This document shows, in pieces, positions 34,001-36,946 of a stretch of 64,000 bases of DNA (its first letter is position 1; each line of letters opens with the position of its first letter). The position numbers and the translations under genes were made by a program. Source of the stretch: Bigelowiella natans CCMP2755 (lineage: Eukaryota > Protista > Cercozoa); the NCBI GenBank assembly GCA_000320545.1, contig ADNK01001475.1, positions 37,900 to 101,899 on the forward strand. Reading direction: 5' to 3'. Below the pieces are notes generated by a model. That model was not told the origin of the DNA. It did not search any database and worked only from the letters and a program-made list of their open reading frames with translations.

Positions 34001-34599
34001 GAATAATGCCCCAATAATTGCATACATAAATGTATATTCATACATACTTACATACATACAAATAATGGGAGCATCTCATATATCTACATACGTGCTATCT
34101 AGACACGCTCTACCTTCTGTTGATAGTTGTCCTTCCTATGCTACTACTACTAATGCAGCACAACGGTTTCCCTTAGCAACGAATACATTTTATGACATAT
34201 GTCAGGAGGAGATGGTGCGAAGACTTTTGGATCGTGCTAAGACTAGTGGAAGATCTGATGACAATATTGAGACTATCAAAAAACGACTTCGCACTTTCAA
34301 TGCGAAGGTATAGTACCATTGTCTTCTCATTTTGTGAGTTTGTAACGATGAATTTGTACTTGGATTTTGCTGATGTTTCATGACCACCGATTGATTAGAC
34401 CGCTGCGGTGCTGAAAGTCTTGCGTGTCATGGGTGATTTTGACCAAATCGATTGCACGCCTTCTCCCGACAAGGTTGTTAAGATTGGTCTTTGAAATGTC
34501 ACAATGGTCATGTTGTTCACATGCCGTTCATGTTTGTCAATGTGCCAGGTGTACACCACTGTCAAGAAGGTCATCGAGCGTGTGATCAAAAAATTCTAA
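28014..34599 (+). CDS. Calcyphosin-like multi-EF-hand protein fused to a UMP-CMP/adenylate kinase domain
   Basis: Calcyphosin-like exons: [19 protein letters not shown]|[47 protein letters not shown]|[28 protein letters not shown]|[22 protein letters not shown]. Kinase: [22 protein letters not shown]|[53 protein letters not shown]. Stop TAA at 34597-34599; the 5' start is not resolved. Confidence 0.88.
29935..30135. repeat. Intronic ~65-bp tandem repeat x3 with a (TAC)n core
   Basis: tactactatcacaccat(tac)n ttgtttttattgtctgcttct units. Confidence 0.85.
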
Positions 34600-35267
34600 T
34601 GTTGAACTCTGATGTTGGAATTTGGCTGATTCCAGCATGGCGCTGGTGCATCAAATGACATCAGATTTGAACCACGTGTTCTGCCATCTTCGATCCAACT
34701 TGCGATGATCGACCAATCGTTGAGATGGGCACAGCTAGACAGCAGAGTGAGAAAATTTTTCATTGCAAACAATTTGAACCAATTCGATTTGTTCCATGTG
34801 CGATGGATGGTCGCAACTCACCTTGGAGGTGATGATTGTGCACATCAACTGATGATGTAGCCTGGCTAGCTGGACGCAGCAGTCGATGCGATGCGGTGCA
34901 AACGTGGCTGGCACACAGCTCACCCAGACTTGCCACATTGCCCGCGATCGAATGTGCACGCATGCCGCATGGTTCTCGCATCGCAGGTCTCGCACGAGTT
35001 TTCAAAGTCGCCACTTCACTCGACAAAACAGTGCGTCCGTTGATTGAGCGAAAGTCACTGTTTGCACTCGAACAAGTGAGTGTTGCGTGTTCGAATGCAC
35101 GATGAACGTTTTCGCAATTGTGTTCGGTTGCAACTGCACGACGCACGTAACCGGCCCTGCCAGTGCCAAACCGAACGTGCAAACGTGTGGTTGCGAGCTC
35201 GAGGAGCAAAAAGCACCTGGTGGAGGCACACAGCAACGATGGACACAGTGACACATGATGGACACAG

Positions 35268-35368
35268 CAATGCACTGCGTGCATTGTGTGCATTGTGCAT
35301 TGCATGTCTGTCATGCAGCAATGCACTGCACACGTCATGCACATTGTGCATTGCATGTCTGTCATGCA
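35268..35368. repeat. 51-bp direct tandem duplication whose copies differ only by CA/TG/CG swaps
   Basis: caatgcactgc-gtgcattgtgtg-cattgtgcattgcatgtctgtcatgca (35268-35317) versus caatgcactgc-acacgtcatgca-cattgtgcattgcatgtctgtcatgca (35319-35368). Confidence 0.9.
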
Positions 35369-35966
35369 CCACGACACCACACGTCCACAATGACATCGCA
35401 AGCTGACGTCACCAGCCAGTCCAACAGTCAGGCCTCACGTTCAAAAGAACTCCGAACGATCGGTTTGGTCGCTGGCAAGCGAAAGGGGGGAAGACAAGAC
35501 ACACTGCGAAGGAGCCGGGAGACGTTGTGATTGACGGCAAGGAAAAACTCCGAAGCTGGGAAGGGCGCAGCTCCGCAGTTCGAAAAGCAGGCGCGCAGGG
35601 ACGGGTGGCCCCGTGCTTGGCAAACGACGTGGAAGGCAGAGTCCTCCAATTTGAGTCTTTTTGGATGGCACGGCAGCTCATTTGATTTTGTCGTCGCCGG
35701 AACCACAGCATTGGCGTTTTTGTTCGTCGCCTGTTCAGTGTTCCAGTGCGCGTTGCCTGCATCGCGCACAGTGTCAAATCGACGTGAGTGTTTCAGTGCT
35801 TCGTTCCTCCATCATCGTCCTTTCCTGGAACACTTGGAAGTTGTGCACAGAGCAGCTACCTTCCCGTTTGGTGTGAACTTGGTTCTTGAAAGCAGCGCCA
35901 CGTCCTTGTTTGTCGTCGCCCTGTCCTCCGGCCGTGGCGCTTGTCTTTCCCACTCCAGCACTCCAG

Positions 35967-36262
35967 ACTTGGCTCGAGGCACTGCGTTTCGCACTTTGCA
36001 AACGTCTTGCAACGTTTTGGAAGTGTGGTCCATCGTCAAATTTCTTTCTTTCTTTCTTTCTCTCCCGCACCCAGCTCGATGACACCACCGGGTTGCTGCA
36101 CGTGGGAACGACTGTCACGTGCTTGGGGTGGATCAAACTTGGCCTCGACGTTGGCACGATGATTGGACAGAAAAAGAGAGAAAGGAACCATGATGATCAA
36201 CTGCACTTCCGAAGTGTTGCACGACATCAGCAAAGCACGAAACGCAGTGCCTCGAGCTGAGT
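35967..36262. repeat. Imperfect inverted repeat: 72-bp core arms (35967-36038 and 36191-36262) around a ~150-bp spacer; possible MITE/foldback relic
   Basis: The reverse complement of the left arm, tgacgatggaccacacttccaaaacgttgcaagacgtttgcaaagtgcgaaacgcagtgcctcgagccaagt, aligns ungapped to the right arm, tgatgatcaactgcacttccgaagtgttgcacgacatcagcaaagcacgaaacgcagtgcctcgagctgagt (about 16 mismatches, mostly transitions). Confidence 0.8.
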
Positions 36263-36946
36263 TCCAACGAGACTGAACGAACAGACACGCTGGCTGGGGA
36301 CCTGACGATGCAGGCGAAAAAATCCCAGCCGATGGGGTTTGTCGCAAGAGATGAAACACAGGCCCCCCTTCTCAATTCCTTTCTGCGACAAATGAAATGA
36401 ACCAGTTCGGAGAAATGAGAGAGCACTCCACTAATTTTCCGAAAGCAAATCTGCTTTTTGTCTTCAGCTCAAATGCGTGATGTTTCCGGCTAAATTAGCA
36501 GCTTTTTCCAACACATCATCGAAGAACCGTCAGTGCGATTTCATAGCTAAATTGATCAGTGCGGAGCATCAAAGCCGAGAGTTTTTTCACAGAATGAGCC
36601 AAACATTGCACAGAATTGATAAAGTATCATGCGTTTTACTTTTTCCTCTTTCCTCAAGAGCGTGTCTGCGTGATTTCGCGCTTCTATGCAAAGTTTGAAG
36701 GTTGTTTTCAGATCAAGTTGGTGTTTGTAAAGAATTATTTTCCCAAAAAAGGTCGATATTTATTGTTTTTGCCATGTCGTATATTTAAATATTAGGCAGT
36801 CCTGCTTGTTAGGTGAAAACAGATGCAGAATCTACGCCCATTTATATCGTAGTAAACTTTTCATCACGGCCTTTAGCTTCGCTGCGGAGGATCGAGGAAG
36901 TGGAGAAAGCTGGAAAAAGGCGGATTAGGACGAAAGATCAGGAATC

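Follow-up and report, generated by a model that had tools for sequence, protein, structure and literature searches.

What could erase one dinucleotide from a defined stretch of a eukaryotic nuclear genome? The question is raised by a 64-kb stretch of Bigelowiella natans nuclear DNA (the window), in which TA dinucleotides really have almost all been lost from a 2-kb stretch between two B. natans genes. The ORF of the RRM gene on the right is identical (172/172) to JGI model Bigna1 88500, the gene neighbouring this ORF clusters with Bigna1 88499, and B. natans transcripts map at 100% identity. Positions below are those of the window; transcribed features and the promoter zone lie on the + strand, and islands and repeats are given without strand.

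TpA loss in a spacer and in the adjoining gene end

The affected island, I1 (34598-36432), contains 5 TpA where 102.4 are expected (Poisson P ~3e-37), and in 2000 shuffles of its sequence the TA count never fell below 71. Its longest TA-free gaps are 709 and 575 nt; across the window, the 99th percentile of such gaps is 74 nt. The sequence-only reading had estimated by eye about 6 TA against about 100 expected at 34600-36450, and counting gave 6 against 104. Its description of the other dinucleotides also holds: CA and TG are abundant (o/e 1.53 and 1.54, with TA at 0.06), CG is kept (0.97), and so are AA and TT (1.19 and 1.32). AT stands at 0.84 in the island. The GC content of this interval is 52% versus ~36% in the flanks, and overall it rises from 36-42% to 52-54%. 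Loss is as strong in the I1 core (34814-36432), the virtually TA-free spacer without transcript support that runs from gene A to the RRM gene (4 TA against 85.9 expected, o/e 0.05; CA 158, TG 150, CG 114; GC 54%). Over the whole domain of ~2.1 kb (34399-36432), ~95% of TpA is lost and the gain in TpG and CpA matches the loss and is strand-symmetric, with 176 TG and 177 CA in I1. YR steps make up ~26% of dinucleotides in I1 and in the whole window alike, indicating that TA was replaced by TG, CA or CG and not deleted. The borders of I1 are gradual over ~300-400 nt, as had been noticed from the sequence.

An expressed host gene lies on either side of I1, which forms the spacer. The left one, gene A, encodes a 513-aa protein with EF-hand and adenylate/UMP-CMP kinase domains, and its exons were mapped with spliced transcripts at 99-100% identity. 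Seven transcript assemblies of gene A end at 34729-34813, to the left of the I1 core, and the RRM mRNA begins to its right, at 36854. The erosion reaches ~400-500 nt into gene A, a live gene, and affects its transcribed 3' end. This end (34399-34813), which comprises the last two coding exons, the last intron and the 3'UTR according to the spliced transcripts, has 4 TA where ~28 are expected. Going by the 19 upstream introns of the gene, the last intron should hold 8.7 TA but holds 1 (P 0.0017), and the 3'UTR has 1, a CTAG, against 16.5. The survivors are a Tyr codon, a TpA near a splice site, the stop codon and the one CTAG. Because gene A is a conserved host gene, the part of the eroded domain in its last intron and 3'UTR cannot have been imported. 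Independent RNA-seq assemblies match the TA-free sequence at 34547-34813; hence at least that part is no assembly artefact.

The stop codon of gene A (34597-34599) holds one of the last TpAs, and it varies among strains from stop to stop. At position 34598 the window reads A (TAA), as do L003, L086, L090 and L091, whereas three further B. natans transcript assemblies, L087, L088 and L089, read G (TGA). This TpA/TpG polymorphism is one of only three strain differences in the eroded 3' end. One TpG/CpG strain polymorphism was seen at 34726.

On the right, I1 is bordered by a TA-bearing zone (36433-36853; 22 TA, o/e 0.55), presumed to be the RRM promoter, that ends at the mRNA 5' end. The RRM-protein transcription unit itself (36854-38180) is TA-normal (o/e 1.06 for the intron, 1.0 for the 3'UTR), with I1 on one side and a second island, I2, on the other, and is covered by two B. 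natans transcripts at 100% identity with identical ends. I1 thus stops ~420 nt before the RRM mRNA 5' end, and I2 begins at most 16 nt from its 3' end.

A sister-species orthologue of the eroded region was not found: the retrievable transcripts all come from B. natans strains and are 99.5-100% identical to the window, and a metagenome scan with cluster look-ups gave, for gene A, B. natans strains only. The B. longifila-like transcript L002 covers the RRM gene alone, which is an uneroded gene. No substitution at I1 was polarised by these relatives, a point against the reading, which we infer, that TA was lost here in situ.

Further islands, surviving sites and internal repeats

Two further TpA-poor islands were found in the window, I2 (38165-40361) and the small I3 (50036-50538). 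I2 is split by a TA-bearing patch (38442-38578) into I2a and I2b. The TA o/e is 0.11 for I2a and 0.12 for I2b, against 0.95 for the patch, and the borders of I2 are sharp (< 200 nt). I2b has a CA+TG o/e of 1.71, with 184 TG and 196 CA in random order. I3 has a TA o/e of 0.17, CA+TG of 1.48 and CpG of 1.01. Islands do not occupy every spacer of the window; none, for example, lies below 18067. The islands resemble neither one another nor any other part of the window, even when compared in an R/Y alphabet that ignores transitions. A scrambled (TA)n microsatellite was considered as the fossil origin of I2, and this was not decisive since normal DNA contains (CATG)n tracts too. TG and CA follow each other in random order within the islands, with runs z values of 0.05 and 1.16, but are strongly clustered in normal DNA (z -5 to -12). 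Random order is as expected for many independent, strand-random hits, and strand-processive events were therefore rejected.

The TpA sites that survive are not a random sample. CTAG accounts for 16 of the 29 surviving TpA in the islands versus 136 of 4930 in the background (p ~1e-17), including most of the surviving TA in I2 and 4 of 6 in I3. The CTAG sites, mostly GCTAGC, are fully spared: their density is at least 100% of background where independent subsite preferences predict 21%, so that 16 sites stand against 2.3 predicted (P 3e-9), and GCTAGC is ~7-fold denser inside the islands than elsewhere. Rather than simply being a poor substrate, CTAG, and GCTAGC in particular, may enjoy active protection, through a base modification specific to the site or through a protein bound to it. 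The surviving sites would in that case be the trace of a second component, a code for protection or boundaries. From the complete immunity of CTAG/GCTAGC comes a concrete prediction for finding the enzyme or a protecting factor.

I1 holds two internal repeats. A tandem 51-nt duplication (35265-35366; 84% identity) has 8 differences between its copies, all of them transitions and all within shared YR steps. An imperfect inverted repeat (35967-36262) has 81-nt arms (35967-36047 and 36182-36262) that are 75% complementary, with 21 transitions, 11 of them within shared YR steps, and 9 transversions; it bears no transposon hallmarks. The sequence-only reading had proposed aligning repeat copies to read the direction of change. 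The differences between the 51-nt copies are compatible with independent hits at ancestral TA. They are equally compatible with ancestral CG, so TG/CA/CG differences between internal copies give no direction alone.

We found no sign of a viral or transposon origin of the islands in Pfam, among homologues or as repeat copies in the window. A repeat origin was rejected: apart from a 25-nt match and the inverted repeat inside I1, blastn of the islands against the window gave nothing, and comparison in the purine/pyrimidine alphabet gave low-complexity matches only. Coding remnants were rejected as well. Among the 20 longest island ORFs, the best Pfam match was no better than E 0.1; a homology search with a 213-aa ORF gave zero matches, and a 183-aa ORF searched against 1.84 billion representatives gave three spurious matches to tandem-repeat proteins. 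The overlapping His/Cys-rich ORFs that had been attributed to lost TAA/TAG stops are real and, having neither a Pfam match nor homologues, are such a by-product. No Rfam family reached threshold in a search for structured RNA, and no tRNAs were found. The islands may derive from an old degraded insert. The earlier suggestion that the process acts in silent or repeat-derived DNA is not shown here, as the window holds no repeat copy and the islands no coding remnant, and the left 400-500 nt of the domain are transcribed.

Relation to published hypermutation and other systems

The sequence-only reading knew of no described eukaryotic system of this kind, which is out of date. Such a system is described in the same species by Mettrop et al. 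(bioRxiv 10.64898/2026.01.13.699255; preprint January 2026, version April 2026), and what the I1 locus adds is new detail. In mutation accumulation, certain regions of the B. natans genome change TpA to TpG/CpA at a rate raised ~1000-fold, with ~6e-7 de novo changes per site and generation; two hypermutable regions yielded 231 single-nucleotide mutations, of which 230 were A:T->G:C and almost always at TpA (10.64898/2026.01.13.699255). This supports the region-targeted process postulated from the sequence. Table S2 lists 206 of 211 mutations at TpA in the NCLDV region, and three TpG->CpG events (10.64898/2026.01.13.699255). The rarest 3' neighbour of the de novo TpA events is G (20/206; 10.64898/2026.01.13.699255). 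This agrees with the sparing of CTAG in the islands. Genome-wide, the preprint counts 124 TpA-poor, CpA+TpG-rich clusters of mostly unannotated sequence, proposes foreign DNA, viral or transposon, as the target class and defence as the role; the proposed agent is an ADAT2-like deaminase, with Bn78255 named as the candidate and an ADAT2 homologue found to carry the residue linked to DNA editing, and ADAT2 of amphioxus and Trypanosoma is cited as acting on DNA (10.64898/2026.01.13.699255). The gene for Bn78255 lies outside the window.

The likeness extends to the species and to the signature of TpA loss, CpA+TpG gain, strand symmetry and no change but A:T->G:C. [quoted passage not shown] I1 (0.05 and 1.54) and I2b (0.12 and 1.71) lie within both composition thresholds, whereas at most two consecutive 1-kb windows pass at any phase; one window in the I1 core reaches just 1.26 for CA+TG, owing to its high CpG. 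The three-window rule is a size threshold and not a mechanistic feature, and the large islands here, at 1.8-2.2 kb each, are below the resulting 3 kb. I1 is also far more saturated, with a TA o/e of 0.05 against 0.45 in the NCLDV region. Unlike the preprint targets, I1 lies between two expressed host genes, one of them eroded, and shows no sign of viral or transposon ancestry. In the parts of the preprint available to us, neither main text nor supplement text mentions the sparing of CTAG/GCTAGC or the CpG surplus, and we likewise found there no spacer location, erosion of gene A or start of I2 at an mRNA 3' end.

Fungal RIP is a regional, dinucleotide-specific transition hypermutation of both strands that is read as genome defence; it needs duplicated DNA, can leak into adjoining single-copy genes and uses enzymes of the cytosine methyltransferase type. 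The islands resemble it in being regional, dinucleotide-specific and two-stranded, in consisting of transitions and in leaking into a neighbouring gene. The direction, however, is reversed: RIP converts C to T at CpA, makes TpA and lowers GC, while in I1 TpA is destroyed (0.05) and GC rises up to 53%. RIP also requires duplicates, and no duplicate of the islands exists within the window. The erasure of one dinucleotide from chosen domains of a eukaryote, opposite to RIP, would be a new kind of genome defence. The RIP analogy is drawn in the preprint too (10.64898/2026.01.13.699255).

The A->G outcome is shared with A-to-I deaminases (TadA/ADAT2-3, ADAR and the engineered TadA base editors). 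The adenine that they edit is preceded by U or T, as in U33-A34 of tRNA and in the 5' U preference of ADAR. The ADAR footprint fits in its 5' T but not on the 3' side, where ADAR prefers G; among the de novo events G is the rarest 3' neighbour, and CTAG is immune. We know of no natural A-to-I deaminase that erases TpA from kilobase genomic domains.

The proposed explanation and its alternatives

We consider it very probable that I1 is a saturated product of the TpA-specific A:T->G:C hypermutation of B. natans. The process would have acted in situ, hitting each TpA independently on either strand until refractory sites remained, taking in the spacer from gene A to the RRM gene and spilling over into the gene A 3' end. 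Points against this reading are the GC and CpG in excess of TpA conversion, the spacers of the window that carry no island, and the lack of any sign that the target is foreign or repeated, the class proposed in the preprint. A T-preceded adenine would probably be deaminated and read as G at replication, with an ADAT2/3-like enzyme as the candidate. A mark guided by chromatin or RNA may single out silent spacer DNA as the domain, or the domain may be an old, unrecognisable insert; the match between island edges and transcription-unit landmarks suggests one or the other.

Converting every non-CTAG TpA of local normal DNA in a model gave a CA+TG o/e of 1.5-1.8, as observed, but too little GC (48% versus 52-53%) and too little CpG (0.45-0.66 versus 0.82-1.0). 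Model substrates with 40-42% GC fit CA/TG and still miss CpG and GC, and native introns as substrate were rejected, as they over-predict CA/TG and under-predict CpG. The proposal that TpG and CpA then proceed to CpG is plausible: the CpG surplus, the three TpG->CpG events and the polymorphism at 34726 speak for it. A gradient of CpG 'maturity' from island edge to core was not significant.

The same outcome could arise by another chemistry without an adenine deaminase, if the T of TpA were modified or an error-prone polymerase miscopied TpA; a TET/JBP-type dioxygenase, for instance, could form 5-hydroxymethyl- or 5-formyl-uracil that then mispairs with G. TpA is self-reverse-complementary, so T->C and A->G are indistinguishable from sequence, and the disfavoured 3' G and the spared CTAG are the opposite of what ADAR-type enzymes favour. 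However, A34 tRNA deaminases (TadA/ADAT2-3) always act on A after U33 and thus offer a natural TpA preference. With the DNA-editing-linked residue in the ADAT2 homologue of the preprint added, we regard this chemistry as unlikely.

That the island was imported or transposed, TA-poor already on arrival, would suit the sharp borders of I2 and a GC and CpG content beyond that of converted native DNA. Against this, the loss of TA extends by degrees into gene A, a conserved host gene, across its last intron, exons and 3'UTR, and the islands lack similarity to each other or the rest of the window, coding remnants and homologues. We know of no natural genome with a TA o/e near 0.05, and this origin is very improbable. 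The related phycodnaviruses average a TpA value of 0.75 (10.64898/2026.01.13.699255).

An equally improbable idea is that I1 is an unmethylated, CpG-island-like regulatory spacer, in which decay of CpG produced the TG/CA excess and selection, for instance against TATA-like, AU-rich or flexible TpA steps, kept TA scarce. Formally it looks like a vertebrate-type CpG island, being intergenic, of kilobase size (1.8 kb), with GC > 50% (53%) and a CpG o/e of ~1 (0.96), and upstream of an expressed gene, and the tandem-copy differences are as parsimonious from CG as from TA ancestors. Vertebrate-type CpG islands, however, are not TpA-free, whereas here TpA erasure is the defining feature, and the 420 nt adjoining the RRM mRNA 5' end, the promoter zone, are outside the island and retain TpA. 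Since CpG is undepleted, CG decay is not the main source of the ~350 TG/CA steps, and selection would have to purge ~100 TpA from non-coding DNA while sparing only CTAG. The TA->TG/CA direction has, moreover, been seen experimentally (10.64898/2026.01.13.699255).

A hotspot of GC-biased gene conversion or recombination could raise the GC of the spacer with graded borders, but such conversion favours all weak-to-strong changes in every context, and the erasure of TA alone, with AA/TT at 1.2-1.3 and AT undepleted, and the sparing of CTAG leave it next to no probability.

Beyond I1, we suggest only tentatively that hypermutation is not limited to recognisably foreign DNA but also saturates ordinary tail-to-head spacers, within limits that transcription units set, and spills into host genes, together with active protection of CTAG. 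Small saturated islands below the published threshold, placed between ordinary expressed genes, mean that the process may shape much more of the genome than the 124 clusters, and as one such gene is damaged, the evolution of host genes may be affected too. A testable hint on how targets are chosen comes from the coincidence of island edges with mRNA ends.

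TpA-poor islands and the genes around them

In the interval 34600-36450, TA occurs 6 times against 104 expected from base composition (observed/expected, o/e, 0.06), while CA and TG are equally enriched (o/e 1.53 and 1.54), CG stands at 0.97, and AA and TT are a little over expectation. The count of about 6 TA in the sequence-only reading was therefore correct. The tightest interval, 34598-36432 (island I1), contains 5 TA against 102.4 expected (Poisson P 3e-37), and 2000 shuffles of it never gave fewer than 71. Its TA-free gaps measure 709 and 575 nt; in the window, the 99th percentile of such gaps is 74 nt. 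The pyrimidine-purine (YR) steps make up ~26% of dinucleotides in the island as in the whole window, indicating that TA was swapped for TG, CA and CG through transitions. This bounded B. natans domain has thus lost TpA specifically and gained TG and CA symmetrically. The stacked His/Cys-rich ORFs exist only because the TAA and TAG stops are gone, as had been proposed, and Pfam and homology searches gave no Pfam match and no homologue for them.

I1 is the spacer between two expressed genes on the same strand. The upstream gene, gene A (28088-34813, + strand, ~24 exons), clusters with Bigna1 88499, and spliced transcripts in several B. natans samples support it over its whole length. It encodes a 513-aa product in which EF-hand pairs are fused to a C-terminal adenylate/UMP-CMP kinase domain; its TAA stop lies at 34597-34599 and its 3'UTR ends at 34769-34813 in most transcript assemblies. 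Downstream, transcript assemblies place the mRNA of the RRM gene at 36854-38180 with one intron, and the B. natans JGI model Bigna1 88500 matches the ORF at 37156-37671 with 100% identity, the next relative being from B. longifila (87%). The RRM 3'UTR carries a perfect 20-nt tandem duplication (37807-37848) in the window that is missing from a metatranscript (L001), an indel polymorphism. On the other side of gene A, an 812-aa gene (18067 to ~28000, - strand) is arranged head-to-head with it with almost no spacer, which accounts for the lack of islands in the first 34 kb. One transcript contig (L087) spans both genes, whose ORFs are 96 nt apart, implying that their 5' ends overlap or that they have a very short bidirectional promoter in common.

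Two further TpA-poor islands were found. I2 (38165-40361) is split by a 137-nt patch of normal TA content (38442-38578; 10 TA, seven of them in 38546-38566), which may have been inserted later or may be a protected element. I3 (50036-50538, 0.5 kb) lies ~770 nt upstream of a Ser-rich ORF at 51311, and CTAG accounts for 4 of its 6 remaining TA.

The TA o/e is 0.16 in the last intron of gene A (1 TA where the 19 upstream introns predict 8.7; P 0.0017), 0.06 in its 3'UTR and 0.05 in the untranscribed spacer (34814-36432). It is 0.55 in the 420 nt that precede the RRM mRNA 5' end, 1.06 in the RRM intron and 1.0 in the RRM 3'UTR, and 0.11-0.12 in I2, which starts at most 16 nt from the RRM mRNA 3' end. 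This match of island edges to mRNA ends hints that domains may be selected through a mark on silent spacer DNA, and transcription by itself gives no protection, since the 3' end of gene A is eroded.

Relation to the known hypermutation of B. natans

The sequence-only reading knew of no described eukaryotic system of this kind; this no longer holds, because a 2026 bioRxiv preprint (10.64898/2026.01.13.699255; April 2026 version) already describes in B. natans what that reading called 'reverse-RIP'. Its mutation-accumulation experiment yielded 302 nuclear single-nucleotide mutations, 231 of them in two regions, one of an integrated giant virus and one of a virophage, where rates were ~1000-fold over background; 230 of these 231 were A:T->G:C, nearly all at TpA and giving TpG or CpA by strand, and only some lines showed them (10.64898/2026.01.13.699255). 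De novo TpA->TpG/CpA hypermutation in B. natans was thereby shown, independently backing the region-targeted conversion that had been inferred from the sequence. The preprint's genome scan, which defined clusters as at least three consecutive 1-kb windows that are TpA-poor and CpA+TpG-rich, found 124 clusters with mostly unannotated gene models, and TpA-poor coding sequences were enriched in reverse-transcriptase and DDE-endonuclease domains; the authors put forward Bn78255, an ADAT2-like adenine deaminase, as the agent and liken the proposed role in defence to RIP (10.64898/2026.01.13.699255). Our window never attains three consecutive qualifying 1-kb windows, so the locus falls outside the class singled out there. 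What it adds is saturation, a location flanked by host genes, spread into one of them, immunity of CTAG/GCTAGC and a CpG surplus.

We conclude with high confidence that I1 is an end product of in-situ TpA hypermutation in B. natans. The chemistry would, with moderate confidence, be deamination of an A with a T on its 5' side, in agreement with the fixed U33-A34 context of the tRNA A34 deaminases. Thymine modification or polymerase error would reach the same result by another chemistry; sequence does not tell them from deamination, and we judge them rather unlikely.

Probable in-situ origin, direction and strain variation

The TpA erosion reaches into gene A, a conserved host gene, where it affects the 3'UTR, the last exons and the last intron; an imported TA-poor element could not account for this. 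Import of TA-poor DNA thus fails at least one direct test and is very improbable. Compared with each other and with the remaining window sequence, also in a transition-blind alphabet, the islands showed no similarity. Searches for coding remnants, homologues and structured RNAs in them came back empty, and the islands may or may not be of foreign origin.

A runs test shows TG and CA to be randomly ordered within the islands (z 0.05 and 1.16) and strongly clustered in the window's normal DNA (z -5 to -12), which fits many independent, strand-random events and argues against strand-processive ones. Between two 51-nt tandem copies there are 8 differences, every one a transition within a shared YR step, as would fit TA ancestors altered independently; CG ancestors would fit too, with fewer steps. 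The copies thus do not prove a direction, which comes from the preprint's experiment. CpG decay combined with selection against TA fails at least one direct test and is hardly credible, and GC-biased gene conversion, which also fails at least one, can be practically discounted.

The retrievable transcripts are all from B. natans strains, and the TA-free 3'UTR is common to all. Three strain differences fall in the eroded zone, a TAA/TGA stop, a TpG/CpG and one transversion, a suggestive but unpolarised set. The first, at 34598, is a silent (stop-to-stop) TpA/TpG polymorphism: the window and four assemblies read TAA, and three assemblies of other strains read TGA. The second, at 34726 in the eroded 3'UTR, is TpG in the window and CpG in one assembly (L091), and may reflect either the postulated further step that creates CpG or plain CpG decay.

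Surviving CTAG sites and the CpG surplus

CTAG makes up 16 of the 29 surviving island TpA, compared with 136 of 4930 elsewhere in the window (Fisher p 1e-17), at 3.6 per kb in islands and 2.5 outside, while all other NTAN contexts are down to 0-8% of background except CTAA (30%). GCTAGC accounts for 10/17 island CTAGs versus 15/151 elsewhere (p 9e-6). It is ~7-fold denser in I1-I3 (2.3 per kb; for example at 34867, 38316, 38320, 39627, 39742, 40152, 40262, 50100, 50200 and 50305) than elsewhere in the window (0.3 per kb), which exceeds the yield of mere survival of a refractory site. A simple kinetic model, calibrated with survival at generic sites (1.2%) and CTAN sites (7.1%), forecasts that 21% of CTAGs, or 2.3 sites, survive. 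If the substrate is taken to have had CTAG at background density, the 16 observed have P 3e-9, so that protection looks more than additive. TGCTAG occurs seven times in the islands and CACTAG never, though TACTAG would give both equally.

A 3' G seems disfavoured in the preprint's experiment as well: in our hand tally of the edited sites in Table S2, the edited A is followed by A 67, T 67, C 52 and G 20 times. An ADAR-like 3' G preference is contradicted by this tally and by the survivors' context. In the same table, TAG (3) and CTA (17) are unequal although the two would be expected to be strand-equivalent. The preprint's main text and the supplement text covered make no mention of CTAG or a wider context.

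Simulated conversion of every non-CTAG TpA in local TA-normal DNA gave a CA+TG excess of 1.5-1.8, as in the islands, with 48% GC against 52-53% observed and a CpG o/e of 0.45-0.66 against 0.82-1.0 observed. Where I1 overlaps gene A, the CpG share is background-like, in contrast to the spacer proper. Either the spacer was GC- and CpG-richer at the outset, or CpG arises in a second, slower step. In Table S2, the hypermutable region has three T->C changes at TpG and one at TpT (10.64898/2026.01.13.699255), four events that far exceed the ~0.2 of any kind that we estimate from the preprint's baseline rate.
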